Source: Eutreptiella sp. 'Long Island Sound 2002' (Eukaryota > Protista > Euglenida). Taken from it: 64,000 nt of DNA. Within the stretch, counting starts at the first letter, position 1. Each line of letters opens with the position of its first letter. The DNA lies in NCBI GenBank assembly GCA_964036045.1, contig OZ038378.1:108438001-108502000 (forward strand). Direction: 5' to 3'. The notes beneath the pieces were generated by a model. That model did no database searches, was not told where the DNA came from, and saw only the letters and a program-made list of their open reading frames with translations. Positions 13,572-61,378 of the stretch are shown piece by piece. The translations under genes and the position numbers were made by a program.

Positions 13572-13829
13572 ACATTCGACGTGCGCGGGTCTGACAACAG
13601 ACGCAAGACTTACTGAGGCACAGACCACCGACGAGTGAATCTTGTCTCTAGACTTCTTCCATTTGACGTACAACTACCTGAAACATCGCTTTCAGAACTT
13701 TGCGGTTTCTTCTGTGTATTACTCGTCACCTACGACAACACTTAAATTTGCATCCTACTACCGTGAAATCAGTGCCTTCCAAGGAACCAAGATCTCGCAC
13801 TCCGTCCTCCGCCACCTCAGAGTCAAGCA

Positions 13830-36249: not shown

Positions 36250-37110
36250 GGCAAGGATTTCTCAGACGAGTGTGCGTATTTGGTGGACCTCTTGGTCGGT
36301 GGCGGGAAGAGGGTACTGTAGGGGTGGACTAAGGTGCATGCGCCGGGGGACCCTGTGGATGACGTGGTACCCGCAGGTGTGGGAGTGGTGTGGATTGGGG
36401 AGGGCCCCTTCCGAGTGTCGGGGCCCGCCTCAACGTGTGTGTTGGCGGTGGGGATGGCCCAGATCCAGGGCAAGGTCCCTGTGGACGGCCACTGGCGCTT
36501 GATCCAGCGGGACACGCCGAGCATGGCTGGTCCCAGGTGGTAGCCCGCTTGCCTGGTGCTTATTTGGGCCAGGGCGCGAGCCGGGGCTTGGTCACCGGCT
36601 GGAGGATGCCCCTGAGGACCTTGTACGGGACCGGTGGGGTCCCCTATTGCCCCTGGTGCGGGGGCCCTTGGGTGAGCATGGTGTCGGTCCCCTTGATGAC
36701 CCATTGCTGGCTGGGGGACGTTGCTGTGGCAGCCACTACGTAGTAGTGCCCCTCCTCAAGGACTGTGCACCAGACCTCCAGCGGGGGGTGGTTGATGTCT
36801 CTAGGGGGGGGGCGGGGAGGTTGCGGAGGCCGGCGGCGCGGAGAGCGGTGTTGCGGGTTGGTGCAGTGGCGTGTTCCCACTGTACCGAACAGCTCGGGTT
36901 CGCCGGGTGGTCTTTCTCTGCTGGGTCTCGCCGTAGGCGTGTGGTTCCCCGGCGTGTGACGTTGTGCGTCAGGGCCTGGCCCCACTCGATGGGGGGCATC
37001 CAGATGTGCTGATCTTGGGTTTGATGGCGGGCTCTCCAGAGGACGGAGTCTACGATGGCCTCGTGGAGGCCTTGCCCCGGGTTTGCTAGGTCCAAGAGGG
37101 CCTTGCCGGT
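36250..37110 (-). pseudogene. Ulp1/SENP (peptidase C48)-like cysteine protease domain, complete copy
   Basis: LANPGQGLHEAIVDSVL; VWCTVLEEGHYYVV (His 36746-36748); WVIKGTD (Asp 36683-36685); TCGYHVI (Cys 36373-36375); TDQEVHQIRTLV. Confidence 0.7.
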
Positions 37111-37729
37111 GATCTTCGTCCAGCTCTCTTGCACCTCTCATAGCGGCCTCCTTGATCAGGGGATCCCTGAAGAGCTATTCGGTCGCGTGGTTTTCGTGGC
37201 TGTGGGTCGGCCAGCTTTTGCTTTGCTGTAGGGCTTCCGCCAGGGACCAGTGCACTAAACTGTCCCTGCCTGTATGGAGGGGGCATATCTTGAAGTGTTC
37301 CCAGTTCTCCGGGGTGGTGTCGTCGCATGAGCAGCGGGTGTGTTCTTCGGGGACGTGGATGTGCTTGTGGGCGAGCCAGCGGGCGACCGTGGTGAGGAGT
37401 GTCAGTTGTTCCCTGAGGAGCTGGATTGGTTCTTTTCTGCAGGTGGGCTGGAACGCACGTCGGGCGTAGCACGGAGTGGTGGAAGGGGACTTTCAGCTTC
37501 TTCTGGAGCTCTTGGATGTGTGCTCGGCTGTCCGTGTCTCCGAGCACGTGGGCGAGATGTTGGATGAGGTTGGGGTAATGGTATGCTCTGTCCTGTGACG
37601 TATAGGGGGCGTCCTCCGGTACCCAGTCCGGGGTCCGATGGGGTTCCAGCTTGGGGTATATGTCTTGGAGGTGTTTGTGGTTGCGGTCCAGGTCTGGCAC
37701 CTTGAGGGTCGGTAGGTGTGTAGTGCGCT

Positions 37730-38165
37730 GGTGTACTGCCTGGATGTCGACCTTACCACTTTCGTATTGGTGCCTGTGGGACTCTTTTTTAAGGATGTGA
37801 AGTTGGACGTAAGGTAAGAGGCTGTGGAGGGCTTTCCAGAGTAGCAGTGCTTGGATGCCGAGGCTCGTTACTGTGGCCTTGTTGAGTGGCTGTTGTGCTA
37901 TGTGGAGGAGTAGCTGTGTGTCGACAGTGGCGTCCACTACGAACCAGACCCGGACGACGTGCGGGAGGAGGGCGGGTAGGTCTGACGCGATTTGGCGATG
38001 GCGTCGGCTATGGCACCGAGTTTCCCGTGGCAGGAGGCCCCGTAGGTGGTGTGGCCCGTGTGGTAGTGTCCCTCGTCGTGGGTCAGTTGCAGGGTGGCTC
38101 CCCTGGTGATTGGCTCGAGGGCGGATTAGCCTGACGTGTCGGTGAAAAAGACTACGTCCGCCAGT
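37730..38165 (-). pseudogene. LINE-C RNase H, downstream copy
   Basis: VVFFTDTSG; WFVVDATVD; KESHRHQYESGKVD. Confidence 0.8.
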
Positions 38166-39391
38166 GATAGCTTTGGGAGGCAGCATGGGTTAATGGGCAG
38201 GTACGCGTATATGGCGAGGCCTGTGGTGAGGTTGGCCACCGGGGTTTGGGGCTGCAGAACGGGGGTGGCGTACACCCCTATTCCCTTGGAGATAATGCGT
38301 TTCGCGCGGGGGACATGGCTATGAGTCCTTGTTCTGGTTGTCCTTGTGTGTAGTAGCAGTAGATGTAGTGGACGATGTAAGCCGTGTCCGGGTTCAGGTC
38401 TCCGCATCCGAGGGTTTGTGTTAGGTGTTCTGGTGTGTGGCAGGAATGGTGAAGCGGCTAGTAAGGGTGTTCGTGTTTACACGTTCTGCCTGGTTTGTGC
38501 ATGCTGTAATTGATTGCCAATCCTGCGGGGTCGGCGCGGGGCCAGGTGTGTGAATAGCAATTTGGGTATGTAGTCCGGGTTCCAAGCCACTGTGGGGTTC
38601 CTATCGGCGTAGGGGAAAGACCGGGCCACACATGCGTAGGCCTGTCGTGGTAGGTGAGCCGCGGGGTGGGTGTGGGGGAGTGCTGTGAGGTGCAATACGG
38701 GCCATGGTGTGGCGGGTGCGTTGGGGTCACAGGCCCAACATGTGCGCGGCATTTGTTGGAAGTTGTGGGGGACCGCTGTTAGGTCCTGGGTGGTCATCTG
38801 GTGCTTTGGTAAGAGCCAGCTTGCCCCCGTGGTGGATATCGGTGATCTGTGTGCCTTTGGTCTCGTTGTGGGGCAGTAGTAGGGTTAGCGGTGGGACCAT
38901 GCCTGTCATTCGGGGGAAGGGCTCGTGATGGGACATGGGTGCTGCTTTTTGAAGTCCCGGTAGGCTGATTTCATGTCTTGGTTTCCCGGCAGAGTGTGAT
39001 TCGCTGCCCGCGCCGTCTGTGTGAGGTACTAGTGGAAGGGGCTGTATTGAGTCCACTCAGGAAGTTGTAGGAAGGGGGTATGGCGTGCCTCGCTGCAGTG
39101 AAGGACCCGCATTTCGGAGAGAGTGACGTACACCACTGTGATGGAGGCTCTGACGAGTCAGATGTTGTCGATGGTGCCTTTTCCGTGATGGTGGACGTCC
39201 CCGCCGAGGACGGCTAGGGGTCCTTCCTCCCGGGAGGTGTGGTTGGTGAGCATGGTGTGGTGTGCGGAAGGGAGTAGAAGCTGTAGGTGCTTCCATATAG
39301 GGGTGTTGATGTTGGTGGCCATGCCCGTCTGATTAAGTGCCCAGCGCAGGCATGTGTTGCGGGCCCGTTGTGCGGCTTGCAGGCGGATCGT

Positions 39392-40150
39392 GGGAACCCG
39401 CAGGTGAGGGGGCGTTGTGGCCTGAGGGGGGGTCCTTCCGTGTGTTGGGGCCCGCCTCAACTTGTGTGTGGGCGGTGGGGATGGCTCAGATCCAGGGCAC
39501 GGTTCCTGTGGACGGCCAGCGGCGCTTGATCCACTGGGACAGGCAGAGCATGTCCAGTCCCAGGTGGTAGCCCGCTCGCCCCGAGAAGATTTGGGCCAGG
39601 GCCCGGGCCGGCGTTTCGTCGGCTCGCTGGAGGACGCCCCTGAGGACCTAATGTGGAGTGGCCGGCTCACCTATTGCCCTGGGGGGCGTGGCCCCTAGGG
39701 CTCTGTGCATGATGTCGGTCCCTTTGATGACCCATTTTGGGCCAGGGGACGCTGCTGCCGGGGACACTAGGTAGTAGTGCCGGCGCTCGAGGACTGTACA
39801 CCAGACCTCCGGCGGGGGTTGGTCGCTGTCTGTAGTTGGGGGGGGGGGGTTGTTGTTGGCGATGCGGAAGCCGACAGCATGATGAACGGTGTTGCGGGTG
39901 GGTGCGGTTGCCTGTACCCACTGTTCCGGGTGGCTCGGGTCTGCCGGCTGATCCTTCTCCGCTGGGGCTCGTCGTAGGCGTGTGGTTCCTCGGCGTGTGA
40001 CGTTGGTGTCGGTGTCGTGTGTCAGGCCTGGTCCCACTCCATGGGGGGGATCCAGATGTGCAGCTCTCGTGTTGGTGAGCCCTCCAGAGAACGAGGTCTA
40101 CGATGGTCTCGTGGAGACCTTTCCCCGGGTCGGCTAGGTCGCAGAGGGCC
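39392..40150 (-). pseudogene. Ulp1-like protease, upstream copy truncated just after the catalytic Cys
   Basis: DLADPGKGLHETIVDLVL; VWCTVLERRHYYLV; WVIKGTD; TCG at 39400-39402, then the sequence jumps back to the post-RT region. Confidence 0.65.
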
Positions 40151-40904
40151 TTGAAGGGGAGCTTGGTCAAGCCCCCTTGGAGGCAGTACCAGCCCAGGGG
40201 AGTGTCTCGGGCCCTGCCTTGGAGGGTTGCTCGGAGGAGGATGGGGTCGCTGACGGTGGCTTTTGTCAGGCAGCGGTGTCCTGGGCAGCGGTGTCACCGC
40301 CCCTCTCATGGTGGCCCCCTTGATCAGGGGATCCCTGAAGAGGTGCTCGGTGGCCTGGTGTGTGTGGCTGTTGGTTGGCCAGCCTTCGTGTTGCTGTAGG
40401 GCTTCCGCCAGGGACGAGCCCACTAGTGTGTCCCTGCCTGTATGGAGGGGGCATATCTTGAAGTGGCCCCTGTCCTCTGGGGTCCTATGGTTGCATGGGC
40501 GGCAGGTGTGTTCTTCCACGGCGTGGATGTGCTTGCGCGAGAGCCATCGGGTGACTCTGGTGAAGAATGCTAGTTGCTCCCCGAGGAGCTGGATGCGTCA
40601 TCTCTGCAGGTGGGCAGGGATGCACGCTAGGCGTAGCGCCGAGTGGTAGAGGGGGACTTTCAGTTTCTCTTGGAGCTCTTGGATGTGTGCTCGGCTGTCT
40701 GTTTCGCTGAGCATGAGGGCGAGATGTTGGATGGGGTTGGGATAATGGTATGCTCTGCTGTGTGAGGTATAGAGGGCGTCCTGTGGTACCCAGTCCGGGG
40801 TCCGATGGGGTTCCTGCTTGGGGGGTATGTGCTCGAGGTGTGTGTGGTTGCGGGCCAGGTCTAGCACGTGGAGGGTTGTTAGGAGCGTAGTGCGCCGGTG
40901 TACC

Positions 40905-41345
40905 GCCTCGATGTTCACCTTGCCATTCCAGTATTGGTGCCTGTGGGACTCGTGTTTCACGATGTGAAGTTGGACTTGAGGGGGGAGGCTGTGAGGGGCT
41001 TTCCAGATCAGCAGTGCTTGGGTGCAAAGGCTCGTTGCTGTGGCTTTGTTGAGTGGCTGTCTTGCTACGCGGAGGGGTAGGTGTGTGTCGACAGTGGCGT
41101 CCACTATGAACCAGACCCGGACGACGTGCAGGAAGAGGGCGGGTAGGTTGGCCGCGATTTTGGGGATGGTGTCGGCTATGGCCCCCTGTTCCCCGCGGGA
41201 GGAGGCCCCGTAGGTGCTATGGCCCGTGTGGTGGTCCATGTGGTAGTGTCCCTCGGTGTGGGTCAGTTGCAGGGTGGCCCCCCCGGTGATGGGCGTGGGG
41301 GCGGACTCGCCTGAGGCGTCCCTGAAGAAGACTAGGTCCGCCAGT
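40905..41345 (-). pseudogene. LINE-C RNase H, upstream copy
   Basis: LVFFRDASG; SSRGEQGAIAD; WFIVDATVD; KHESHRHQYWNGKVN. Confidence 0.8.
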
Positions 41346-42699
41346 GATGGCTGTTGGAGGCGGCATGGGTTCATGGGCAGCTAGGCGTATATGGCGAGGC
41401 CTGTGGTGAGGTGGGCCACCGGACCGGTGGGATGCAGGATTGGGGTGGTGTACATCCCTCTTCCTTTGGAGATGATGCGTTTCACTCGGAGGGACATGGC
41501 TATGAGTCCTTGTTCCGGTTGCCCTTCTGTGAGGTAGGAGTAGATGTAATGGAGGATGTAAGCCGTGTCCGGGTTCAGGTCTCTGCATGTGAGGGTTTGT
41601 GTTAGGTGGTCTGGTGTGTTGCACGAGTGGTGGAGCGGATAGTAGGGGTGATTTTGCTTGCCCGTTCAGCCTGGTCGGTGCATGTCGTAATGAATTTCTA
41701 TTCCTGCGGCCCGGGGGCGGGGCCACGTGGGCGTCGTGGTGAATAGCCATTGGGGTTCGTGGTCCGGGTTCCAGAACCAGGGAGCCACTGATGCATAGGC
41801 CTATGGTAGTAGGCCGGCTGTGGGGTGGTTGTGGTGGCGTGCTATGAGTTGCAAAAGGAAGCATGGTGTGGTAGTTGTTTTGGGTTCACAGGCCGGACAT
41901 GTGCGCGGCATGTGTTGGGAGTCGGGGGGGACCGCCGGTAGGTCCCAGGTGGTCATGGGTCTTTTGGTATGCGCCACTTTGCCTCGTGGCGGATGACGGT
42001 GGTTTGCGTGGGTTCGGCCTCGTCTTGGGCCAGTAGTAGGGTTAGCGGCGGGACCTGACTTGTCACTGCGGGGACAGGTTCGTGCTTCGAGCCGATGGGT
42101 GTGTGGGGCGCTATCGCCAGGCGAGATAGGCGTGTTGCGTTTTGAAGTCGGGGTAGGCTGTTTCTCATGTCTTGGTTTTCCGGCAGAGTGTGCTCACTTG
42201 CCCATTCTGTTCGTGTGAGGTACTGGCCGAAGAGGCGGTATTGAGGCTACTCGGGAAGTTTCAGCAAGGGGACGTGGTGTGCCCTGCTGCGGTGAAGGAC
42301 TGGCATTTGGGAGAGAGCGACATATATTACTGTGATGGAGGCTCCGACGAGGTCGATGGTGTTGACAGTGCCCCTCGGGCGATGCTGGAGGTCCCCGCAG
42401 AAGACCGTCAGGGGTCCTTACTCTTGGCATGTGTGGTTAGTGAGTATAGCGTGGTGTCAGGAAGGGAGTAAAAGTTGCAGGTGGTTCCATATGCGGGTGT
42501 TGGTGTTGGTTGGCATGCCCGTCCGGTGGAGTATCCAGTGTGGGCATATGTTGCGGGCCCGTTGCGCGGCTTGGAGGCTGATCGTGGCGACTTTGCGAAC
42601 TTCCGGGGAGTGGTCCTGGGTCATGCGGTGAAGGGGGAGGGAGGTGTGTCTGGTGTAGGCCGCTTTACCTCTTCTCATATGGGTTCCACATAAGGGGGC

Positions 42700-46769: not shown

Positions 46770-47275
46770 TGAATTTCTTTCCGAACGAGATCTGCACCAT
46801 CTCCCACAACTTACAACGCCGCAAGAAACTTTCCCTGCAGACTGTCCTCCATCTTTTTCAATGGTTTTGATATTGTGGCCTTGCACGAAGTGGTTCATCA
46901 CATGCCCCCTCCTCTTTGCTACGAATCGTCAAAATTCTTCCACATCGTCAGTCGTACTACTACAAGGGGCACGGCTTTAGTATTGTCCCCGCAACTTGCG
47001 CCCATGGCATCGGAACTCATCACTGACCCACGTGGCTTGTTGACATCTGCCTTGTTACGCCTTCCTGGACTCCTTCCCGTACTCATACTCTCTGTTTACG
47101 CGCCACGAAGCGATGAGGAGTCACGCGAAAACATCATCTCCTTAATTTCTGTTCTTCTAGAACAATATCCACTTCATTGACTCATGGGCAACTTCAACAC
47201 ACTACCGAAGAATGCTCTGGACTCAGAGGGTGTCAACTCCGCAAACGTGTGGCCCTGGCCCTCCAATGCAGTCAA
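46770..47275 (+). pseudogene. LINE-B APE endonuclease, N-terminal part
   Basis: ICTISHNLQ, VALHEV, GTALVL, LSVYAP, MGNFN. Confidence 0.85.
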
Positions 47276-47719
47276 TGTAATGGGGCAGAGCATTTTGCTA
47301 CTGTTCATCTATCTTTGTATTGTTTTGGCAGGATCAGGCACCGCGATGCGCGTGCCGCAGAAATCGCGCATTGCGCAGATTACATAATAGCTTTTGGCAG
47401 TCAAAGATTGTCTTTTCTTCTTAATTTATTTAATGTTAAAAGATCACTGCATGCTATTGTTTATTCTGTATGCGTAAATGCATGATCTGTTCATCTACCT
47501 TTGTTTAGGTAATGAACAGAGTATTTGCTGAACCAGCTAGTGCTGGTCTTTGAATGAGATCGCAACAGTGAACAGAGTTCAATAACATCTGGGAGTTCTT
47601 CTTCTGCGTGCCGTTCTGTGGTTTCCGACGTGAAAGGTTTGGTGCTAGTGAGTATGAGTTCTGAAATGGCATGAACAGAGTATTGTGAAGCACCGTGAAA
47701 TAAGGACACTCCTATTACA
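47276..47719 (+). repeat. 5' LTR, 444 bp
   Basis: About 8 substitutions versus 50314-50757 (manual count, ~98% identity). Confidence 0.95.
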
Positions 47720-47730
47720 GTTCAGCAAAT
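47720..47730 (+). other. Putative self-priming PBS GTTCAGCAAAT
   Basis: No TGG tRNA-type PBS; exact reverse complement of ATTTGCTGAAC at 47523-47533 inside the 5' LTR. Confidence 0.7.
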
Positions 47731-47744
47731 CACGTTCCTACAGA

Positions 47745-48227
47745 GGTAGGTAGGTAGGTATCTTCGGGAGCTCGGGATGCCTCCTTTGACGGTGCAGGAA
47801 GAAGGTCTTACCACGGGGACGTCCTGTCCCTCCCACTGCCCTATGTTAGGTGCCTCTTGAGCCGCTCCCGCATGTGCTCGGGAAGGCATTGTCGCGGCCA
47901 CCCGGTCCATGTGTCCCAGGTGGGAGGGTGTCCCCACATGTGTCCATGAGTAGGGCCACATGCCCCCTCCTTTGGGCGGCAGCTCTGGGGGCTGCCCAGC
48001 CGTGTGGAGTATCTCTCACCACAAGGGGTATTGCTCCCGCTTGTCTACGGTACGACCGCCTCACCCTTGTGGCTTGAGTTGCGGGGCCGCTCCGCTTTGC
48101 AGGCGACCCCCTCCTGGACTGTGTACCGGCTCGCCTGTCACCGGTTGCATCCATGGCTCCGGGTGACGTTTGCCATGGTCCCCGATGCAGCCTGGCCGGG
48201 CTCGGACCAATAGCCTTGGAGTACCGC
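47745..48227 (-). mobile_element. 483-bp 3' fragment of a (TACC)n-tailed non-LTR element
   Basis: TSD TCCTACAGA (47736-47744, 48228-48236); GGTA repeats at the 47745 end; motif blocks shared with 5773-6250. Confidence 0.85.
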
Positions 48228-48264
48228 TCCTACAGAACGTGCCACGAGAAGAAGACGCCGTACT

Positions 48265-49365
48265 TTGCGTGCGGCGCTGCCAAGATCGTTGCGAACATTG
48301 CGACATGGCATTCCGACATTGAGTGTTCAACCTTTTTCTCTCGTTCTCTTGTGCGGCGCTGAGCACTGCAGATACGCATTTACGACGCCAAGGCTGAAGT
48401 GGAGTAGTGTGCTACTGATGCGGCAGTCCCTTTTGGCTGGTGCAGCTCAGCAGCGTTGCCACTGCAATCAATTTGCAATCAACGTACGGTGCCGCAAAGC
48501 AGCGACTTGTTCAGTGCGCCGCGCCTCACAGAGACTTATGGATCTCACGTGCAATGACTGTCTTGTACGCTTACCGTCAGGGCGACAACTCGTCGTGGAC
48601 CACGTCTATTGTCGTCCCCGTCACAAGGTCAACCGCATATCAGTGGCAGCGCTGTCTGTGCGAGCGCTGTCAGACGCGGAGGACGACAGTGGGCCTTGTG
48701 CGTGGGCAGAGATGCGATATACGGGACAACAAGACAGAGATGGTCGCATTGTAGCGTGCTGGCCAGAAGAGTGGGCGACGGGCGCCCATCGAAGGCCAAA
48801 GAGCCCAGTGCTGTGCGTTGTAGCGAAGGCAGAGGATGAAGATATGTGGATGTACAGTATGCTGCTGAGGCAGCAGCAAGTTGACTACGACAGCTATGAT
48901 GAGCACTTAGAGGAGAAGCTGTGGAATAACATCCGAAGAGTGGCGAGTGAGAGAAAGGCACGTCGTACAAAACGACAGCAGGGGCCCACGCTGGATTGTA
49001 AGAGCCTTTTGGTGCAGCAGATGCAGCGACGCCGCAGAATCCAGCGTGAGGAAGACATCCAGTGGAGTACTCTCAAGGAGCTGCGCCCTGGGAGAGGGTG
49101 TCACAGGATTGGGTTCAACTTGAGTATACCAACTGTGCAGAGGACGCCAGCGGAAGTGCCACAGAGCACAGCAATTTCGCTTGAGAGTGGTATCCAAAGT
49201 GATCCCAGAATGGACCTTATGGTTGAGACGTTACAAGCCATTGCAAGGAATACAGAACCCACGCAAGCTACACCGGTGCAAGAGATTATTACAAAGCCAA
49301 AGAGAAAGAGGTGTGAGAGGCCACGCAGCCGTGGTGGCTCCAAAAAGGCTGACACGACAGACTGA
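48265..49365 (+). CDS. Orphan Cys-rich/basic protein carried by the LTR element (first ATG 48418, 315 aa; open frame 366 codons)
   Basis: Uninterrupted frame; CHC...C...C...CNDC cluster; C-terminal KPKRKR. The same frame stays open after the TGA until 49602. Confidence 0.55.
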   Translation: MRAALPRSLRTLRHGIPTLSVQPFSLVLLCGAEHCRYAFTTPRLKWSSVLLMRQSLLAGAAQQRCHCNQFAINVRCRKAATCSVRRASQRLMDLTCNDCLVRLPSGRQLVVDHVYCRPRHKVNRISVAALSVRALSDAEDDSGPCAWAEMRYTGQQDRDGRIVACWPEEWATGAHRRPKSPVLCVVAKAEDEDMWMYSMLLRQQQVDYDSYDEHLEEKLWNNIRRVASERKARRTKRQQGPTLDCKSLLVQQMQRRRRIQREEDIQWSTLKELRPGRGCHRIGFNLSIPTVQRTPAEVPQSTAISLESGIQSDPRMDLMVETLQAIARNTEPTQATPVQEIITKPKRKRCERPRSRGGSKKADTTD

Positions 49366-50129
49366 GTCCGCGCTGTGTGTGCAGGGTCATGCAGGGCCTT
49401 CAAGGCTCGCAAGTGCTCGCCCGGGGCTCGCTGGGATTGTTGTCTCGCAGTTCCCTTCGGGGACTGCAGTGGTGTCGTGGGCCGCAAACGTGATTGTAAA
49501 TTCGAAAAAATTTCCTACTACATACAACACACGCTCGTATACTGGTGGCGCGCTCCTCGAAGGAGGTGGGATGACTATTCAAATTGTGGCTTGCAGCGTT
49601 GAGGAAAACAAAGTTGGAGTTGAGCATTAGCGCTGTCGAGTACGAACAGGGATGCCATTAAATACGTTGACTAAATGAGCAGTGCGTATTGTCGACGCAC
49701 ATCTTGGAGATCCGCATGTACGCTGTTTCGAGCAATTTACTTTCATACCGTAAGTTTTTATGTTCTTTGTTTTGTGCAATTACTTTTTCGCAGTTGGTTG
49801 CCTTTTTTTCCGAGGTGACTGTGGCCACGGAGGCACAATTGCTGCGCGGTTGAGAGTGCCTGATGCAACATCACCTGAATTGGGTACAGGACACAGCAAC
49901 ATTTTTTTTCTTTGCTTTGTCTGCGCCCTGGTGTGAACTGCATGCTGTTTTGTGGTAAACTGCAGAGGTTTTGGAAACAGTGCAGGATTCTTTTACTTGC
50001 AGTGTTTGTCGAAACGTTTTGTGGTTGAAACCAACAGCAGGGGTTCTATGTGAAAGCAACTACAAACAGGGTACCTGTCTATGCGAATAAGGGTAGATGT
50101 TTGTGTGTGCACCCCTTGGTGGTCAAAGG

Positions 50130-50147
50130 TTCTGAGTGTCTATTTCG
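50130..50147 (+). other. Euglenid spliced-leader-like relic TTCTGAGTGTCTATTTCG
   Basis: 16 nt identical to the Euglena SL core as recalled (TTCTGAGTGTCTATTT), then CG with the pyrimidine run shortened. Confidence 0.65.
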
Positions 50148-50303
50148 TAGGCCAGAATCCACCCATGTTTAATAAGTTGGCAGCAGCACACTGTTTTTAC
50201 TGTGCAACCCCTTAGGAAGGGGGTAGCAAAAGCCTCAACCCCATTTGTATTTTTTTCGGCTTTGTCAACACCTCTCTCTTTTTTGAGAGATGTGTTGAGA
50301 CCT

Positions 50304-50313
50304 AGGAAGGGGG
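50304..50313 (+). other. Polypurine tract of the small LTR element
   Basis: AGGAAGGGGG abutting TGTAAT. Confidence 0.9.
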
Positions 50314-50757
50314 TGTAATGGGGCAGAGCATTTTGCTACTGTTCATCTATCCTTGTATTGTTTTGGCAGGATCAGGCACCGCGATGCGCGTGCCGCAGAA
50401 ATCGCGCATTGCGCAGATTACATAATAGCTTTTGGCAGTCAAAGATTTTCTTTTCTTTTTAATTTATTTAATGTTAAACGATCACTGCATGCTATTGTTT
50501 ATTCTGTATGCGTAAATGCATGATCTGTTCATCTACCTTTGTTTAGGTAATGAACAGAGTATTAGCTGAACCAGCTAGTGCTGGTCTTTGAATGAGATCG
50601 CAACAATGAACTGAGTTCAATAACATCTGGGAGTTCTTCTTCTGCGTGCTGTTCTGTGGTTTCCGACGTGAAAGGTTTGGTGCTAGTGAGTATGAGTTCT
50701 GAAATGGCATGAACAGAGTATTGTGAAGCACCGTGAAATAAGGACACTCCTATTACA
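50314..50757 (+). repeat. 3' LTR, 444 bp
   Basis: Direct repeat of 47276-47719, followed by TSD GTCAA. Confidence 0.95.
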
Positions 50758-50762
50758 GTCAA

Positions 50763-50974: not shown

Positions 50975-51419
50975 TGTAGGTTGCAGTGATTCAGAGCCGC
51001 TCAGCTAGGCTGCAGGCAGGTAAAATTGGCTGTGATGAATAGCATTCGCGGCAGAGCTCACGCCTCGGAACGTCCCTTGCAAATTTGTGTGTGATTAATA
51101 GACAACGCTTCAATTCAGTACGCTTTGTTGATCAACAATTGTAGCAGTCAGATTGTATAGATATTTCATCATGATCAGTATTGAAGGTCGGTTCACTGTC
51201 ACATTCCAGGGTCCTTTTTCACGGTGCAACAATGACAATGAATGGATATTCGTGGTCCTGATGTTGTGATCCTGCTTTGGACATCATTGAGGTCTGTGAT
51301 TTTGTAGTTGGCATGATTCCGGTCTCAAAACAAGGTTCCTCATTTCAAGGAGTAAAACTACAAGTGGGCTTTGCACGATTGGATCGACAAACAATCCATG
51401 GCTTCACAAATGTCTAGCA
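50975..51419 (+). repeat. G3 5' LTR
   Basis: TGTAGG...CTAGCA; colinear with 61379-61823, roughly 85-90% identity by eye. Confidence 0.9.
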
Positions 51420-51432
51420 TGGTAGCGGTTTG
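51420..51432 (+). other. G3 PBS (TGGTAGCGG..., initiator tRNA-Met-like)
   Basis: TGG immediately after the LTR-terminal CA. Confidence 0.75.
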
Positions 51433-51832
51433 TGGTCAACAACAAGCCATTGCTTATCAAGTGCCGGCCTTTGCGTGTGGCTCTTTTACGTCTCTTGCGT
51501 CCAATGAGAACATTGGAGGCAAGAGAGGTCTTTGGCGTATGGATGTTGATTTTGAACCTTGCAAGGTTCGGGTTGAAGGATAACGTTGGTTTGCCTCTCA
51601 AGGCAATCCTAATGAGTGGCTCCCGTTCATAAGTGAACCTATCACTTATATGGAGTCCATTGTTGATGAGTTTGGACGCTAAAATGAAGTAAACTACAAA
51701 CACTTTGATTTGCACTCTCAAAACCTTGAAGGAGTGGCTTGCGCCTTGCATGTTGCATCGAAAAACGATAAATGTCTACATTCGGAGATTGCTAATTTCG
51801 TGGTGCAATCGCTGATTGGGACAAGCGATTGA

Positions 51833-54354
51833 TTGAATTTCTTAATCAATTCACAAAGGATGTCCAACAAATTGGCGCGGAAAATGCGAGTTTGGAAACT
51901 ACCATGGAACGTAATAAAGCACGTCGCGAGTTGGTCGCCAAGGGCGCTAAAATGTTTTGTGGGTGAAGGATTTCAAGTGCCGCCATCGCCTTTGAAGGAT
52001 ATACCTTTGTTGGATCGGGTTCCACAACGCATCAATCAATGGCAGGAGGATTTTCGGCGCTTGGATGTATCGCACTCACAAGCTACTGCCGCCACATCCA
52101 TGGTGGAGGAGGCGTGTAAGTCATGTGGCAAAGATGTTGCTAAGCGTTGGACTGGTATTGAGAAAATGGACATCACCTTTCGTGAGTTCGTTGAGAATGA
52201 AATTTTCAAGGTTCAAGATCATTATCAGGCAGAAATTTGGTTGATGAGTCATGAGCATTCGCAGAGGATTGCAAGTATGCAAGTGGCTCATCTTAGAGCC
52301 ATTGAGAAAGTGGAGACGGCTTGTCATGGGAAGATTGAGACTTGGGAAAAAAACGTTCAAGAGCAAATTAATCGCTTGACTCATTCAATGTCCACGCTTT
52401 CGAATTCTCCTTCCCATGCCTTGTCAACCATCACTTCTGAATTTTGTTGCTCGCAATGTTCATGCGTTGTAGAATTTCGTAAAGCCGAATCCAATATTGA
52501 AACTCGACTCACCGGCATTGAGTTGGTCAATGCAACTATAGGTTAGCCAATGAGAATGTCACTAAACCTCTTTGCTCTTTACTCCAGGAGCGTGCAAATG
52601 CGAGTTAATCCAACGAACAACATCCAGGGATCATGAATTTATGACAAGAATTGGGGCCGTCGGATTCACACCGGGAGGTAATGGGCAATGTGGGGATGAT
52701 TGCCCATTGTCTTGATCATGTGTCACCGATACCAGAGAGGTGCGAATCAATTTGGAGGGTAGTATGGGCACTCACGAAGACAAATTTAGGCTGTTGCGCA
52801 CGTCTATTCACGAGTTACGTGATGAACTCGTGGGTCTGAGTCGTGAGCAGACTATTAAACATGAGCCCATTAACTCTGTGTTGCCTTCTTCCATTGCAGC
52901 GTTCACTCTCGACGTCTCCAATCTTCAACGGGAAGTGGCAGCGGTACGTCTCGCCATTGAGGGATGGGAACACGAAGGAGTGGATGAGGAAAAAGAATTC
53001 AGCGACGATGAATCATTTCAGGTATGCTCCTCCGGGCGCCCTGGAAGGCATGCCAATTGTACAAATAGATCGGTTGAATCCCTGTCCTCGGCTTTCTATG
53101 GACGGGGACAAGATAATGCCTCCAAGTGTTCCACCTCCGCCCCATGTGCAGCGAAAAAAAGTTTTCTTGGCGTTGTTTGTGATAATTTCCATTGGGTTGA
53201 TGGTGAACGATACACCTCCTCCATTTTTTCCCACCCACAGACACTTCATCATAATATCACACAAGGCAAGTTACCCACCTTGGATGTGCCGAAACTGTCG
53301 GTGAGTGGAATTTGCCGGGGTGTGAAGAGTGGTGAGCAAGGAATGTTCGGGACAATGTTTGGATGGCGAGTATGGTGAATTTGGTGGCGAGTATCAAGGA
53401 ATTATTTCGCGAGACAAAAATGTGTCCTTCGGAGGTGACATGATTTTTGAAATTTTCTTGTCGAAACAAAAAATCTGGGAGTGCCCGATGCAGGACCCGA
53501 AGGAATCCAGGGGAAGATCTGCCGCTTGTTTGGGCTCACGGGATCGTCCAGGCCCCATTTTGAAGCTTTGGACGACAACATCAGGAAAGAGGTCCGGAAA
53601 ATGTTAAAGTGTCCTAGATGGAAGGGAGACTAAAAGCAGTGGCTCGCCTTCGAGTTACTGTGGAGGCGGTCTCATGATCACTGGTCTAGGAGATGTGGAG
53701 CCGACCTCATGGCAAAAATTCGGATTACTACACGCACGGAGGCAGAACGGGCACTCTATACGGAGATTCACATGACGATGGGATGGACCTACCAACAAAT
53801 TTGGTTGGAATTGGCGGGGTCGCCGGGGCCTACAAAGCTGGCGTTCATTGCGGCGGGTATGAACAGCCTCCCAGCCTCCGCCTGGAAAATCGTGGGAGAA
53901 ATTTGGAACATGGGTGCTGAAATCGAGTTTTTTGCTCCCAAAAGCAATGGCGGTTGCGGCCGAGAGGGCAAAGGAATTTTTTGTGGACGCCTTGGTGCAA
54001 CACCGTGAATATGGTGAGGAGTTGAATGAGGTGTATAAATGGAAACAGATCCATGGACAGGAATTGACGGTGGCAGGAGTCCCTGAGATCCTGGTGTATG
54101 AGATTGGGTGGCGTGAAGACCGCGATTCGGCCCAGCATGAAGACGCGGCCAAGGTCCAGAGAATGCACATCGGGGTGGGGTCCGGTAAGTCCAATGAAAG
54201 GGCCGCGGTAAAGGCCGCCCTTGCATACGTGGTCAGGATGGCCGCGATCAGAAACAAGGTGGCCGTGGACGAGGTGGAAAGGACGGGCAAGGACAGAGTG
54301 GACAGAGACAGGGTAAAGGCCAGGAATAACATTGCACAAAGACGGGCTCACTGA
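51833..54354 (+). pseudogene. gag: G3 gag-region frames (coiled-coil-like N-terminal part, capsid-like remainder)
   Basis: Frames 51833-52546, 52740-53378 and 53709-54354 between PBS and protease; assignment is by position. Confidence 0.55.
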
Positions 54355-55089
54355 ATTTTGTTGGCAGAAAGGTGCAAAGGGCAAATGTAACTGTGGAAAG
54401 GGCCGCCCAACCCTGCAGCAAGCGGACGCTGAGACTGAGCGTCGTTTCAGGTAAAAGCTCTGTCTACACTGTGCCTCGCCTGATCATTGGGCCAGGCATT
54501 GTCCCCAGAACAGTCCCAGCAAGCAGCAGGGTAAAGGGCGTGGCCGGGGAAAGGGCCAGCACCGCCAAGTGGGTGCTGAGGCGTCACGGGAGCCGCCTGG
54601 CGACCAGGACGCGGGGAAGAGCCAGAAGGGCAGGGGGACTGATGAGCAGGGCAACCCAGCAAAATTGCCTGGGCAACCAGGACCCTCAGGCGCTTCGGCT
54701 AAGCCAGCTGCTGGACGAGAGACTCAAGGCTGAAGCTGTCTGAGCTGAGCGAAAAAAAACGGAAACAGGAATGCCTGAGTAACACAACCACTGTGAACAC
54801 GGCCATTGCCCCACTGACCGCTGTCAACGATCAACAGACCCCGACCACCACTGTGGGGTGTGGCGTGCAGTCACAGCATGGCATCCTGAATTCGTCTCTG
54901 GGGGCCGCTGCTTCTGTAGATCAGCCCCCAGAGTCTCTTGTGTTGCCTATGCTTGAGGTCTGCATCCGGTCATGTGCACTGCGTCCTGCCACTGTACGAC
55001 GCTATTCACTGGCTTGTGGCATCACCAGAAAAAAAGTGTGCAGATTCAGGCGCAAGCCGGCACCGACTCAGGTTGATGGTGCCACGACG

Positions 55090-55440
55090 TTGGTTGTATC
55101 TGAAGTTGTTGAAGGGGTGCAGTACACAGTATTGATGGACTCCAGTGCCAAGGTGTTTGTTTTTTAAGAATAAAGAGTTGTCACTCGCTGCCCGCCCACT
55201 GCAGATCACAGTGGCAGATGGCAGTTGTATCGCTGGTGGTACACATGGTGCCACAGTGTCCGGAGTGGTGCCTGTCAAACATCACGGGCGCATGACTGAG
55301 ATTCTCTGTGAGGATGTGTTTGTTTACAAGGCTGATGTAGTCGAGCATGTCATCCTAGGGTATCCTTTTTGTAAGTCGTATGGACTGACGATTGATCCAG
55401 TCCGCGACTGTCTGATGGATATTTCTCCATCAGTTTCTAT
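55090..55440 (+). pseudogene. G3 aspartic protease
   Basis: VLMDSSA (decayed DSG), ITVADGS, VILGYPF. Confidence 0.8.
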
Positions 55441-56489
55441 TTTTTAGATGAGTCACGAAGCGCCTGAGTTGAGGGGTCCGCTTGGAGAGCCCAGGCAAGA
55501 CTCAGGGATCAGCGGGGACAGCCAGGCAGAAATAACAGTGGCCATGTGTCGACACTGTTCCGAACTTTATGTGTGGTCCGGGGAGGTGGGGAGTTGCTCC
55601 CAAAAACACCTGGTAACTCAGGGGTCTACGGCACCTGACAGGGATGAGCAGGGTTCGCTGTGCTGTGCCACTGAGGTTGCTGCAACCATTTTTATGTTCG
55701 TTGGCGCGTTTGACCCTACCTCACACGCACCTAGTCCCAGGCATCACAGTTGGCACATTTGCTTCTGTCACTGCTCCCTGTATTCCTTGTATTCCTTCCA
55801 CAGGATGCCCACGTCAGCATGAACGAGAACCTTTGGGTCTGGATCGCCAGGAAACGGGACATCCGGAGACAAGGACATCGTGCAAGAATTTTCGCAGGTT
55901 TTGTATGTGTGCAATTGACTGTTTGTGTGTTAGACAGTGCATGAGTGGGGGGTTGTGTCCACCTGCGGCCCTCGTGTTGAATGACGAGTCAGAGCATCCG
56001 CAACGCCCATGTATCATAGATGCCGGGTCTGACCCAAATTCTGAGGCATATGGCACAGATGAGCTCCAATCTGACATGGAGGACGTGCCTGATGCTCATT
56101 CTGTATATACAGCCTCGCACCCCGATTCTTTTGCGGGTGGTCTTGGGCTCCGTCCTGACTACAGGGGCCCAGCCAAAGCTTCGGAAGGGGGCGGCGCACA
56201 GACAACCACCAGCCCCATTTTCCTGTCTTCATTGTAAGTGTGAAGAGGATGAGGGGTGCGCCATGTGTTGACCGGGAGATATCCCCAGGAATGATTTGGC
56301 TGATGACGAACAGGGGGGGGGGGCACTGAAGATGACCCATATTGGATCCACACCAGTCACATCACGACAGGTGCGCGCCCAGTACTCAAAATTGTTTCGG
56401 AAAATGGCACTTCAGACCGCCGGTAAATGCCGTCAGGCCGTGCGCAGGAAGATGAGACGATCCACTAAATCTTTATACTCACAGGGCAA

Positions 56490-56880
56490 TCACATTCTTT
56501 CATCGTCAGTGCAAGACATGATTCTGAAATGGGCTGGGCTGAAGGGTGATCAGTTTGTTGATGTTCTTGCTTCCAACCAGCCCCACTTGTTTCCAGAGTA
56601 TTGGTATAAAGGGGAGAATGGGTTGTCCCATAATTGTTGTTTGTCGGACTCCAAAGGGCGACCAGAGCAAACATTTTTATGGTTGCATACACCGCACCAC
56701 TTGCTGCAAGACACAATAACCAAGGTTATGCTGGACCAGGGCAGAGGAATCCTGCTGGCACAGGTATGTAAGCAGTGTCCACCGCTTTGGACGTTGGGGG
56801 AAGTGGCACTGGATTGGTTGGACCTCGACCCAACAGTGCCCTTATATGGGAACATCGATGGGCAGATTCTGCAGCAATCT
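56490..56880 (+). pseudogene. DIRS/Dam-like N6-adenine methyltransferase-like domain between PR and RT of G3
   Basis: FVDVLASNQPHLFPEYW...FLWLHTPHHLLQDTITKVMLDQGRGILLA...LWTL resembles the DIRS MT pattern (VDLFAS...FPPF.LI..VL.K....A..ILV.P). Confidence 0.65.
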
Positions 56881-57238
56881 CCCGACTAGACGACCAGGTT
56901 TGTGCTGTCTGATGCGCAGGGTATGGATCTGCGTCAGCCCGCTGAGGGTAAGAAATGGGGGTGTACAGATGAGTCGGCCGCGGGGTAGACGGATGGCTGC
57001 CACCAGATTAGTTCTGCGTGTTGCGTCTGCCATTCCAGTCACCGCGTTTTGTCCCCGCCCTCATCCATGAGGGAAGCACGGGTGTGTGTGCTGCGGCACG
57101 AAACTCCTGCACATTCCCTGCTTTCGGAACGCAGTTTGCAAACTGTTTTTGAGGGCGATCGTATTGAACCCCTGTTGTGTGCCGTATCAGAAGATGTTGG
57201 AGATGAAATTTTGAACTGTTTTTGAGTTTGCAAAAAAT

Positions 57239-58830
57239 ATGCTGACGGAAGTGGACCATTCCAAGCGTGGTGAGGCTGGCATCGCGCGAATAAAATTGAA
57301 ACAACGAGCCGTTCCTCAGAGGGTCGGTCGTGATAGAACTGTGGGAGTCCGAGATGCCGCTTTTCGTGAAATGATTTTCACCTTCTTTGAGCGCGGCATG
57401 CTCGGAAAATCAGTTTTGAGTTGGGCAACCACGGCGTTTTGTGTGCCCAAGCCGTAGGGCAAATGTCGGTTAGTCATTACTCCTACCTCAATTCGCCAAT
57501 TGCGGATGAGGCTTTTCTGCTCCTGGTCATTGAAGACATTTTTTGGAGCAGTCCAAAAACGCCATTTGGTCCATCTTCGATTTGGAAGATGGGTTTCACC
57601 AAATGGTTTTGGAGCCTGAGTCCAGGCCCCTTACAGCGTTTGTGACGCCGTGGGGTCTTTTTCAATGGACAGTGCTCCCCATGTGGCTGAGAACGGCCCC
57701 ACAGGCCAATCAGACAATGGTCCAGCTCTGTTGGGAGGAAACGGGGCTGAAACCCTACATTGATGATGTGCTGAGGGGTACACCGAACACAGAGGATAAC
57801 CCAGATCTGGACGCTCCGGTGACTGATGGGTGTCTTGGTCAGCACTATGAAGATTTGTGCCAAATTTTAACATGTTTGCGGGATTGGCAGCTGTCTATTA
57901 GACCGTCCAAGGCGTTTCTGTCTTCGAGACGACTGTGTTTTTGTGGGCAGATTTTAGAGCGAGGAAGGAGATCGGCAGATCCTCAGAAGGTCGCTGCAGT
58001 CTCCAGGTGGGATTGGCAGGACATCTGGACCCCAACCCACCTGAAAGCATTTTTGGGGTTAGCGGAGTGGTATCCATTTTACATTGACAAATCTTCGGAC
58101 TACGCAGCGCCGCTGACGGATGCCCTCCGGGGTCTGGATTCGACGAGAAGGGGAGAATTCAAGTCTAGAGACCGGGCCCTGAGCACGTCCAGACGCAAAG
58201 CTGTTTTTCAGCAGTTTTTCAGTGTCACAGAAGCAGAAATACAAATATGTCGTTTAGAGAACAGGATTCACTGGAAGCCAGAGATGATCTGGCATTTTCA
58301 GCAACTGAAGGAAAAATTATTCAATCCCGTACAGCTGTACATTCCGGATCCTCAGACGCCAGTGACTTTGCGGTTGGGGGTGTGCTGGAGCAGCGCCGCT
58401 GCAAATGTCCTGAGCCTGACAATCCTACCCAGGGCTGCGGATGTCCCCTATTTCCTGTGGCATTTTTTTGGAGAAAGTTGCAGGGGGATAAGTTCCATGG
58501 CCAACGTGCCTGGCCAGGGAGGGACAAAGAAACTTGTGCCATTGATGCGACACTCCAAAACTTTCACGCATGGCTACAGCAGTCCAGACTTTTTTTGAAG
58601 TCGCCGTGGGTCGCAACGGATCACCGCAGCCTGGAGTACATGATGAAGGAGGACTTTGTCACGGTGTACGGTCCAGTAGGCAGACAGCGCCGCTGGCACC
58701 AGTTCCTGTCGCAGTTTTTTGTAGATGTAGTGTGTGTGCCCGGACAGAATCAGGAAAATCCTGACGGCCGCTCACGCTGGTCTTACCCGGCGTATTTGTA
58801 TAGTCCTGAAACTAACATACACGGTACCGA
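57239..58830 (+). pseudogene. pol: G3 RT and RNase H
   Basis: FDLEDGFHQM, FQWTVLPM, YIDDVL, FCGQIL; SDASDFAVGGVL, ATDHRSLE. Confidence 0.92.
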
Positions 58831-59436
58831 GGAGGACGCTGAGGGCGTAGCAGCTAATGAGAGGGAGCAACGAGCCCATGCAGATCAGCTCCTGGAGAGG
58901 GCTGAGGGTCATGGTGAGACACAATTTTCTACGCAATTTTGTGGCATGGCATTCCCCTTTGTCTGCATCAGGGGTGACGCCTTCAGATCAGAAAGTTGAT
59001 GTGTTCCAGGACGATGCTGAATTTTTTGCTGAGTTTGAGGACGTGTATGCTACGTATTGCAGTCAGGTCAGAACTTTGTGTTCTGTTGAAGGCCTGCCAC
59101 GTAAGGCACACCGAAAAGCACAACGCGTCACGATTTCGCAGGGACGCAGCCAGAAGTGGTCTGCCCTTGCCCTTGGGGCTGCACTGCAATGTGCGCCTGC
59201 TGCCTGTGTTGCAGACTGTGATTCTGATTAGCCATGGGCGATGGTCCGCGCGGGGGGAGCGGTTCCCCCTGAGGTTTCTATTTTGCATGACGACTGGACT
59301 GGTTTTTATGAGCAGGACCCTCATCTCATGAGAGTCCTGGCTTCTTTGCGGCAAGAGCAGGCGTCTCTTCGCGCGCCAGGTTCTGCGTTTTATACTCCTA
59401 GGCCTGATTGTTTACGTCTGCGCTAGCGGGGCAAAC

Positions 59437-60747
59437 ATGTGGTGCCACAGGTCATCAGTCAGAAGGTTGTTCAGGCCTGCCACACGTATGTCCATGTTGG
59501 AGTGGACAAGACCTTTTTGCTGTGTGATACAAAATTTAATTTCCCTGATACAGATTTGCGCAAGTTGGTCTGGCAGCTCTGCCGGGCATGTGAGGTGTGT
59601 CATCAGACTAAGCCCCAGACTGGGAAGCAACATGGGGAGCTCGCGTTTTACCCCGTCCCTGATGACCCTTTCACTAGTTTAGCCATCGTTTTCGTAAGTC
59701 TCCCAAAAACTGTCATTAATGGTGAGACTTGCGACTACCTGATGGTCGGCGTGTGCCGGTTAACAGGCTACATTTTGGCCATTCCAACCCAAGAATTGGG
59801 TCTGGATAGCCGGAAGTTAGCTGAAATCTTTCTAGAGAGAGTTGTATTTTTTATGGGGTTACCGAAGAAATTGTATTCGGACAATGCTTTGGTTCTGAGC
59901 AGCCAGTTTCCTTGAGCGGTATTGGACTACACAGTAGCGTTGTCTATAAATCAGCCACAAACCGCAGGGCAGAAATGGCGGTCAAGAGTGTGGTCATGTC
60001 GCTTAGGCATTTCTGACTCAGCGACCGCGCTCTTGGTATCATCCCCTCCCCCTAGCCTTGTGGGGGTTGAATAACCTGCCGGGTTTGTTTCCCCCCTACT
60101 CACCCCACAGGCTAGGTTTCGGGAGGGACCCCGTAGAGTTTGGGGAGGTACCCCCCACAGTGTCGGGAGATGGGGCGGGGGATGCGCAGCAATTTTTTTC
60201 GAGGCTTGTGACTGAGCGTCAACAGGTCAAAACTGCTTTGAAGCGCTTGCACGACAAGGAGTCGGGCGCATTGCGCAAAACGTTTAAGGTGCAACCTTTC
60301 AGAGGGGATGATCGTGTGTGGTTGCAAGATCGCCCAAAGTGGGATCAGCCTCACTACAACAAGTTGAAGCAAATATGGCAGGGCCCGTGTGAGGTAATAC
60401 GGTGGGAGGGGGGGGGTTGCTATGTGATTCAGGTGGGGGAAGCCAAAAGAGTAGTTGCCTCAGATCGTCTGGAATTTTACAGATCCATCTTGAAAAAGGT
60501 GACAGCCCCCTTTGTGTATCACAGTGATAGGCAGTTGCCGCCCAATGACGACACGCATATGGTCGAGGATGTCTTGGACCATGCGGTCAAAAGGCCCCGA
60601 GGTGCCTCGCCTTATCTTCAGTTGCATGTGGCTTGGAAGGATCATGAGGACAAGACGTGGGAGGACGCTCGGAAGTTCATTCGGTGGGGAAATGATAGGG
60701 TTGAATTTTATTGCACGCGCCATGGTCTGAAGAAATCGTTGAAGTAG
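59437..60747 (+). pseudogene. pol: G3 integrase plus chromodomain
   Basis: CHTYVHVG...CRACEVC; YSDNA; WQGPCEV; VEDVLDH...VAWKDHEDKTWED. Confidence 0.9.
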
Positions 60748-61368
60748 ACATGGTGATGTTTGGCATTCCATCTACCTCCCGATGCCTGATTGTTTTCCAC
60801 TGGGCATTCCCTCTCTGCCCCATAGGTCAGCCACTCAGCAGTTTTGTCCCGGTTGAGTCATTTACCAAGAAGAGCGGGGTAAGCGGTGTAGGACGACGAT
60901 TGTTGCATTGCAACGTGCCCGCAAAGAGGCTGCTCCGTCCCCAGATGACAGAGTCTTTTTTTTGCTGTACTTCTGCATGTTTGTGACTGTTTTGTTTTTT
61001 TTTGTTGTTGTTTCTTTCTGTACGTGCAGGTTCGTGTTGAGTCCCAGAGTCCAGAGCAGAGCCACCAGATCGTCCGGACCATGCCGTGGAGATGGTCAGC
61101 TTTAAGGGTGGGTGTCTGTACCTGGGCTTGCTCATCCGGTTTTATTTTTCAGTAGGCATTGTGTGACCCTGTTGGATGATCGGGCCTGTAATGGCCGCTG
61201 TCGGGAATTTGTTCTATCACTTCTGCTGCTAGGTCAGTTACAGGAACCGAGTCTTGCCAGGGCCCAGCTACATATGTTGATGTTTGCTGCCCCTTCTTCG
61301 TCCCGCTTAACTGCCGCTGTAGTTTCGGACTTCCGGGGTCAGACAACACACGAAGCGTGTGCTGTCCT

Positions 61369-61378
61369 GGGAGGGAGA
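61369..61378 (+). other. G3 polypurine tract
   Basis: GGGAGGGAGA abutting the 3' LTR TG. Confidence 0.8.

Follow-up and report, generated by a model that had tools for sequence, protein, structure and literature searches.

A non-autonomous long terminal repeat retrotransposon family of the euglenid Eutreptiella with a candidate self-priming signal

The 64-kb window analysed here (64,000 nucleotides of contig OZ038378.1, assembly GCA_964036045.1, from Eutreptiella sp. 'Long Island Sound 2002') contains, at positions 47276–50757, a complete long terminal repeat (LTR) retrotransposon of 3.5 kb with TG...CA ends, a 5-bp target site duplication (TSD) and a polypurine tract (PPT). The 11 nt directly behind its 5' LTR, where the primer-binding site (PBS) would lie, are the exact complement of a site inside this LTR. 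With moderate confidence, we propose from this arrangement that minus-strand synthesis in the multicopy family to which the element belongs starts by self-priming of the Tf1 type, in a trans-complemented form.

Complementarity between the primer-binding site and the LTR

The proposal concerns the following features, in which U3, R and U5 denote the unique 3', repeat and unique 5' parts of the LTR:

47276–47719, plus strand: 5' LTR, 444 bp, TG...CA, identical at 436/444 positions (98.2%) to the equally long 3' LTR at 50314–50757
47276–47522 (U3) and 47523–47719 (R-U5), plus strand: subdivision of the 5' LTR in the self-priming model, the boundary being inferred solely from the position of the 11-mer
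47523–47533, plus strand: proposed self-primer ATTTGCTGAAC, which would open R with its 11 nt; complementary to the PBS at all positions and unaltered in most copies of the LTR
47720–47730, plus strand: PBS GTTCAGCAAAT, starting at the first base past the LTR, identical in 13 of the 15 copies that retain the junction

Complementarity between PBS and LTR is the accepted basis for predicting self-priming, as in Tf1, Tj1, sushi, Tcn1 and TAR (PMC7175516, PMC4600332, PMC6317226). Both sequence features of the self-primed class are present in the element: no TGG-type PBS occurs within 40 nt of the LTR end, and the post-LTR bases have an 11/11 complement inside the LTR. A preceding sequence-only reading of the window had reported this exact complement and the lack of a tRNA-type PBS, and both observations were borne out at the coordinates listed above.

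GTTCAGCAAAT at 47720–47730 and its reverse complement ATTTGCTGAAC at 47523–47533 are the sole two exact occurrences in the window, and neither 11-mer has an exact occurrence outside family copies in 311 kb of the same genome. The duplex is exactly 11 bp long, since A47719 opposite C47534 and C47731 opposite T47522 block its extension on both sides. The 3' end of the LTR 11-mer pairs with the first base past the LTR. The 3' end of the primer therefore abuts the last LTR base, and on extension the ...ACA at the end of U5 would be the first stretch to be copied. With LTR position 248 of 444, the complement has a plausible location for a U3/R boundary.

Analytically, a 444-bp LTR has a chance of ~1e-4 of containing an exact 11-nt match at offset 0. 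Among 20,000 dinucleotide-shuffled LTRs, a match of at least 11 nt was found at offset 0 in 5 (~2.5e-4) and, with offsets 0–5 allowed, in 75 (~4e-3). The exactness and correct placement of the 11-mer, taken together with these low counts, indicate that the observation is real and unlikely to be due to chance. Three control elements, namely the neighbouring element G3, a gypsy element at locus L015 and a small LTR element at locus L011, showed no complement of at least 8 nt between the first 25 post-LTR bases and their own LTR. None of the other repeat pairs examined in the loci had the self-priming signature, and the 11-mer is not part of the RTGAACAG repeats that are enriched in the LTR.

Copies of the family

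About 15 further copies were recovered from assembly ENA ERZ25074135, which is the window's own assembly. Its contigs reach 3.3 Mb, the window lies on one of 1.75 Mb, and all three initial protein matches were to this assembly. A 35-codon pseudo-open reading frame in the LTR was used as a handle and gave 11 cluster members, all of which were fetched; two older copies were obtained via fragments of the internal open reading frame (ORF). In total, the family comprises about 16 copies, spread over more than 10 contigs. Each of them is the same ~3.0-kb element and lacks pol, and the family LTR ends read TGTAATGG...ATTACA. Other copies are flanked by individual 5-bp TSDs, such as TTTAC and CATAT, and the identity within LTR pairs ranges from 91% to 99.3%, which together point to repeated retrotransposition over time. 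One locus (L002, 2587–8206) contains a tandem LTR-internal-LTR-internal-LTR array with units 99.3% identical and a single TSD, TTTAC.

Pfam analysis of the ORFs in the interior (47720–50313) revealed no protease, reverse transcriptase (RT), RNase H or integrase, in agreement with the original description of the element as lacking RT and integrase. The absence of pol domains combined with many transposed copies that have separate TSDs defines the element as non-autonomous.

Both 11-mers represent the majority state of the family. The complementarity thus belongs to the founder and not to a single copy.

Proposed priming mechanism

In the proposed mechanism, the genomic RNA would start at or upstream of position 47523, and its segment AUUUGCUGAAC would fold back onto the PBS GUUCAGCAAAU, the first base of which lies directly past U5. 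RNase H activity supplied in trans would cut after C47533, and extension from the freed 3'-OH would run through A47719 and on into U5-R. Strand transfer would be followed by regeneration of the 11 nt from the 3' R and by renewed copying of the PBS from the primer. A helper element would provide Gag, protease, RT/RNase H and integrase. We infer where the RNA starts, that it is cleaved, that priming takes place and that a helper exists. The suggestion of Tf1-like self-priming made in the sequence-only reading holds with regard to anatomy, geometry and the majority state across the family, whereas the checks for covariation and for a helper were not positive.

Evidence weighing against self-priming

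Several observations weigh against the proposed mechanism. The first group relates to RNA folding. In favour of the proposal, the 11-bp duplex is within the minimum-free-energy (MFE) fold of the 223–248-nt R-U5-PBS RNA. Its ensemble probability, however, is 0.17 in the 248-nt context and ~0 with at least 100 nt of downstream sequence, forcing the duplex costs 6.7 kcal/mol, and the overall fold is unremarkable, with a z-score of -0.55. Thermodynamic folding overall is neutral.

The second group is the variation among copies. The covariation between the LTR 11-mer and the PBS that was looked for across copies is absent, as the family consists of one young lineage and all variants in the 11-mers are singletons. 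Of the 25 LTRs aligned, 6 have a singleton change in the 11-mer. No variant is common to two copies, which counts in favour of the proposal, and none is compensated. The substitution density (minor-allele rate) of the 11-mer is 2.55%, on a par with the LTR average of 2.79%, and it contains 0 informative sites versus 12.4% of LTR columns. The oldest copy (L014; 87% LTR identity, own LTR pair 91%) reads ATTTACTCAAC and GCTCAGCAAAT and has three uncompensated changes, which leaves 8/11 pairs. One uncompensated change each was found in L015, L009b, L005, L011, L001 and the 3' LTR of the window copy; L015 keeps 10/11 pairs. These uncompensated changes fit what would be expected from neutral decay of dead copies, and give neither positive support for self-priming nor a refutation of it.

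The remaining points concern the primer and the enzymes. The neighbouring gypsy element G3 has a TGG-type PBS. A scan of the window and of loci L001–L003 (~100 kb) with ARAGORN yielded no tRNA gene with which to compare the PBS, and no pol-encoding element sharing the LTR, the PBS or the leader was found among the recovered loci and in the searches described next.

Search for a pol-encoding helper

The 11 members of the 35-aa LTR ORF cluster all belong to the same non-autonomous family, and a search with a 79-aa antisense LTR ORF returned one more family cluster alone. Exact scans of JGI metagenome contigs and IMG/VR for the PBS-plus-leader pattern gave nothing, and neither protein searches nor pattern scans revealed relatives of the family outside assembly ERZ25074135 or any diverged active relative. 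The search for autonomous elements with the same LTR, which the sequence-only reading had named as a check, was therefore negative for the ORF, LTR-ORF and pattern approaches. Chromodomain-bearing gypsy elements are present in the same genome, and none of them is linked to this LTR.

Two candidates were rejected. A 23-nt match to the context of the LTR 11-mer in an unrelated 162-kb contig had no further homology and was taken as chance. An apparent autonomous copy in locus L009, with a 1172-aa RVT_1 ORF starting from the family ATG, proved to be a 5'-truncated LINE-type (long interspersed nuclear element) RT fused in frame after codon 41. In this locus, a 4.4-kb segmental duplication (3865–8295 and 10981–15411; 98.6%) takes in a family copy's 5' part, and the LINE-type RT ORF fused to the first 41 family codons (15288–18806) is located in the second duplicate.

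Alternative explanations

The best-surviving alternative, which we consider possible though unlikely, is that a host RNA (a tRNA half, another tRNA fragment or a small RNA) primes at GTTCAGCAAAT or an overlapping site, while the LTR complement serves some other purpose. The latter may be a long-range RNA contact involved in packaging, dimerisation or regulation of primer access, comparable to the 5' RNA interactions of Ty1 and retroviruses. The 11-mer is unlike a tRNA 3' end, as it lacks TGG. Read as an anticodon-loop fragment, it would have C at position 37 (GAA reading) or G37 (GCU reading), both of which we take to be atypical from general tRNA rules. A host-RNA primer would also require a PBS-like site that matches two partners at once, and the LTR boundary is the exact end point of the duplex, a position that priming needs but a structural contact does not. 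On the other side, the fold-back duplex is not favoured thermodynamically in longer RNA contexts, and the gypsy element in L015 also lacks both a TGG-type PBS and a self-complement, so that unconventional primers may exist in this genome. Half-tRNA primers are, moreover, known in some copia lineages (PMC6317226). Rfam at gathering thresholds gave no match in the 64-kb window; the PBS sequence for comparison with host tRNAs, tRNA fragments and small RNAs is GTTCAGCAAATCAC.

Less probable still, the complementarity arose by chance or as a side effect of the internal repeats of the LTR and became fixed in a young family's founder, with some other mechanism serving for priming. It is seen in one lineage with no signal of constraint or covariation, the LTR is rich in short repeated motifs, and the many features inspected at first imply some multiple testing. 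Such a coincidence has, however, a chance of ~2.5e-4 to 4e-3 per element, and the controls were negative. The family has also transposed repeatedly with this arrangement and with no alternative PBS, and the 11-mer lies outside the RTGAACAG repeats.

Spread of the copies by segmental duplication or recombination, with no reverse transcription and no need for a primer, is suggested by the L009 duplication with its part of a copy and by the L002 tandem array, but it is largely refuted by the independent TSDs and is very improbable, given that most copies have unrelated flanks, their own 5-bp TSDs, a PPT and TG..CA ends, and that their own LTR pairs are generally closer to each other than to other copies.

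Repeats and hairpins in the LTR and behind the PBS

Three structures accompany the two 11-mers:

47487–47519, plus strand: inverted repeat CTGTTCAT...ATGAACAG with 8-bp arms and a 17-nt loop, ending 3 nt before the LTR 11-mer
47534–47545, plus strand: small hairpin CAGC-TAGT-GCTG that adjoins the proposed cleavage site on its 3' side and occurs in MFE folds; its function is putative
47731–47744, plus strand: left half of the 7-bp hairpin CACGTTC-CTACA-GAACGTG, containing TTCCTACAG and interrupted here by a foreign segment

Both 11-mers are thus directly trailed by a small hairpin. The one behind the PBS is perfect and follows it directly in most other copies that keep the junction. The inverted repeat at 47487–47519 is unchanged in young copies and has one uncompensated arm change in L014. 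It had been described as a hairpin that ends just before the predicted start of the RNA. The inverted repeat is indeed present, but its arms are two of the five copies of RTGAACAG in the LTR and hence resemble a repeated regulatory motif.

The 5' LTR contains RTGAACAG five times, counting both orientations, and of the 11 matches in the 64-kb window, 9 fall inside the two LTRs (47301–47678 and 50339–50716). In addition, a 14-nt direct repeat, ATGAACAGAGTATT, is located at 47512–47525 and 47671–47684. The RTGAACAG copies and ATGAACAGAGTATT are probably regulatory repeats.

Boundaries of the element

The direct LTRs with TG..CA ends, the TSD GTCAA and the PPT at the 3' LTR correspond to the structural definition of an LTR retrotransposon. 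The boundary features are as follows:

47271–47275, plus strand: left TSD copy GTCAA, with the identical 5 nt at 50758–50762
50214–50245, plus strand: second PPT copy AGGAAGGGGG, then the initial ~23 nt of the LTR in inverted orientation
50304–50313, plus strand: PPT AGGAAGGGGG adjoining the 3' LTR, conserved in most copies
50314–50757, plus strand: 3' LTR, in which the 11-mer at 50561–50571 has one substitution, ATTAGCTGAAC
50758–50762, plus strand: right TSD copy GTCAA, matching the left copy

The PPT duplicate is located 90 nt upstream of the true PPT. The two inverted repeats I1 and I2 (50214–50245 versus 50304–50339) are 83% complementary over 23 nt and could, in RNA, form a stem that encloses the true PPT.

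Internal region

The interior of the window copy comprises four recognisable parts:

47745–48225, plus strand: foreign GC-rich segment of ~480 nt, found in the window copy alone and absent from all other copies
48226–48537, plus strand: 5' untranslated leader common to all copies, 92–94% identical to other copies
48538–49365, plus strand: orphan ORF of 275 codons with its ATG at 48538, the sole long ORF of the interior
50130–50145, plus strand: exact 16-nt copy TTCTGAGTGTCTATTT of the euglenid spliced-leader (SL) core; the number of matches expected in the window is 0.02 even with 2 mismatches

The window copy is 3.5 kb rather than ~3.0 kb in size because it has gained the foreign segment, which also disrupts the hairpin behind the PBS. 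This segment is 93% identical to L010 13063–13549 (minus strand), with a further match to L010 80–202, and its right junction lies within the microhomology CGYTCCT. The dispersed repeat extends further in L010, which indicates that the fragment arose from recombination or template switching and is no clean transposon insertion.

The orphan ORF has an N-terminal CxxC...HxxC, a central helical region and a basic C-terminus. It is intact in 7 of the 12 copies that retain the ORF region. The ratios of nonsynonymous to synonymous substitution rates (dN/dS) between ORF copies are 0.4–1.3, as expected for decaying insertions. The product matches no Pfam family and has no Gag or zinc-knuckle match, and its AlphaFold model (pLDDT 36) is unusable. 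Protein searches retrieved family copies alone among 5.8 billion clusters and, with no length filter, the ORF itself alone among 1.84 billion representatives; accordingly, no Gag-Pol protein with a related N-terminus was found in them.

Profile comparison gave a marginal match (E = 0.004) of residues 45–146 (48670–48975) to the ribosomal protein eS12 of Trypanosoma brucei (4v8m_AF), in a part that includes an LCVxA...DED...W stretch. This similarity was unsupported by Pfam, and a search with the segment returned family fragments alone. Residues 45–146 may represent a captured and diverged fragment of a host gene, which we regard as a lead only.

The spliced leader of Euglena gracilis and Eutreptiella is ACACTTTCTGAGTGTCTATTTTTTTTCG (PMC5654406, PMC3621762). 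The SL copy of the element is located at the same site in all family copies and is 17 nt long in most others (e.g., L006 9812–9828). An ATG follows 18 nt past it, with a decayed ORF of 16 codons; the SL-tagged piece is ~170 nt in total. This piece resembles a trans-spliced host mRNA's 5' end that was picked up through template switching. The bases after the SL copy in most other copies are GTAGG. Given GTAGG versus the 5' splice site GTATA of E. gracilis, an SL-RNA gene is a possible alternative origin.

Neighbouring and other elements

The degenerate Ty3/gypsy element G3 (~50985–61823), whose RT, RNase H and integrase zinc-binding ORFs are frameshifted, is located 227 bp downstream of the element described here. 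Its LTRs are ~435 bp long and 88.7% identical, and its PBS starts with TGGTAGCGG (TGG). A further element, G2, consists of a minus-strand RT ORF between 2.7-kb direct repeats (7393–10028 and 29401–32133; ~84–89% identical, 22 kb apart). Both G2 and G3 had been taken as tRNA-primed. This holds for G3, whose PBS begins with TGG, but the TGG stretch of G2 lies inside both 2.7-kb repeats and its assignment as a PBS is doubtful.

The window also contains a 1.92-kb tandem duplication (25509–29355; 98.8%) and a degenerate tandem repeat of ~3.17 kb (36366–42587) in a GC-rich, strongly GC-skewed block. An assignment of flanking sequence to a LINE by its GNFN motif was dropped, as it was unsupported by Pfam.

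Two elements at other loci lack both a TGG-type PBS directly past the 5' LTR and a self-complement: the gypsy element with RT/RNase H in L015 (561–8751, minus strand) and a 2.9-kb non-autonomous element with 373-bp LTRs in L011 (16896–19794). Judging from their sequences, unconventional priming may be common in this genome. In L014 (14273–17737), an ORF with a weak Dam methyltransferase match adjoins an RVT_1 ORF, as in the DAM-LTR retrotransposons of Euglena gracilis (bioRxiv 10.64898/2026.05.21.726589). The genome of E. gracilis is reported to be rich in LTR elements (PMC11252322). Together with the exact SL copy inside the element, these points by themselves make a euglenid nuclear genome the most likely host.

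Trans-splicing and significance

The outron acceptor of E. gracilis consists of a C-rich pyrimidine tract plus CAG (PMC11170887). Compared with this description, TTCCTACAG just past the PBS appears to resemble a Euglena 3' splice acceptor. If it acts as one, a trans-spliced subgenomic mRNA for the ORF could, speculatively, coexist with unspliced genomic RNA. The patchwork interior suggests template switching onto co-packaged RNAs. Putting these points together, one may envisage a euglenid self-priming LTR system in which the visible members are helper-dependent, the interiors were built by template switching onto co-packaged SL-capped host mRNAs, the genomic RNA would have to keep its native 5' end, and TTCCTACAG could yield a trans-spliced ORF mRNA. 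As a whole, this picture is tentative and, in our estimation, doubtful.

In the open-access literature searched, self-priming elements were described neither for Euglena nor for other Euglenozoa. If confirmed, the mechanism proposed here would extend self-primed reverse transcription to Euglenozoa and would imply that a non-autonomous element can rely on a helper whose RNase H makes an unusual cut in an RNA duplex. It would also raise the question of how full-length genomic RNA with a defined 5' end persists beside trans-spliced mRNAs. With its 3 kb and one ORF, the family also lends itself as a small natural substrate to transposition assays in Euglena. Should the mechanism not be confirmed, the family would be an ordinary non-autonomous LTR family with some other primer.

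Comparison with known systems

Like Tf1/Tf2, Tj1 and the Tf1/sushi group, the element has no tRNA PBS, and its PBS, which lies directly past the 5' LTR, is the complement of a stretch within the LTR. Members of this group are, however, self-primed Ty3/gypsy chromoviruses, whereas the element described here has no gag-pol and resides in a protist with SL trans-splicing. The transcription start, the cleavage and any U5 inverted repeat (U5-IR)-type structure are putative here, and a self-primed autonomous partner was not found among the elements recovered. As the element lacks pol, it has no placement in the Tf1/sushi lineage, and the likeness drawn in the sequence-only reading cannot be taken as membership.

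Self-priming of Tj1 (PMC4600332) and of several fungal elements and vertebrate sushi elements (PMC6934838, PMC4600332) was inferred from the same signature. Among the plant LTR elements surveyed, 12% were likewise predicted to self-prime, with the Tcn1 clade and the copia TAR lineage among them (PMC6317226). Self-priming is thus tied neither to a single RT lineage nor to fungi and vertebrates, in contrast to the earlier view that it is known mainly from fungal and vertebrate chromoviruses. The prediction for the plant Tcn1-clade chromoviruses and the Ty1/copia TAR elements (Houba, Osr-1) was made from the same kind of sequence signature as ours (PMC6317226). The plant elements are autonomous and classified by their RT, while in our case only a non-autonomous derivative is available.

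The family shares with large retrotransposon derivatives (LARD), terminal-repeat retrotransposons in miniature (TRIM) and terminal-repeat retrotransposons with a Gag domain (TR-GAG) the retention of LTRs, PBS and PPT, the absence of pol, and a mobilisation in trans that is implied by the TSD-flanked copies. It differs from TRIM (<1 kb) and the typical ORF-less LARD by its size of 3.0 kb and the intact orphan ORF. Membership of TR-GAG is unproven, as the ORF has no Gag or zinc-knuckle match in Pfam. Non-autonomous families usually share LTR and PBS with an identifiable autonomous partner, whereas no such partner was found for this family.

The patchwork interior, with its SL-tagged fragment, a possible eS12-like stretch and a repeat segment joined at a microhomology, is reminiscent of gene-capturing elements such as maize Bs1 and of retroviral transduction. 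In contrast to those, the captured origin is no more than suggestive here, given E = 0.004 for eS12 and an SL piece of ~170 nt with a decayed ORF. Self-priming was known before from fungi, vertebrates and plants, and the Eutreptiella family adds a case of this known kind of element.

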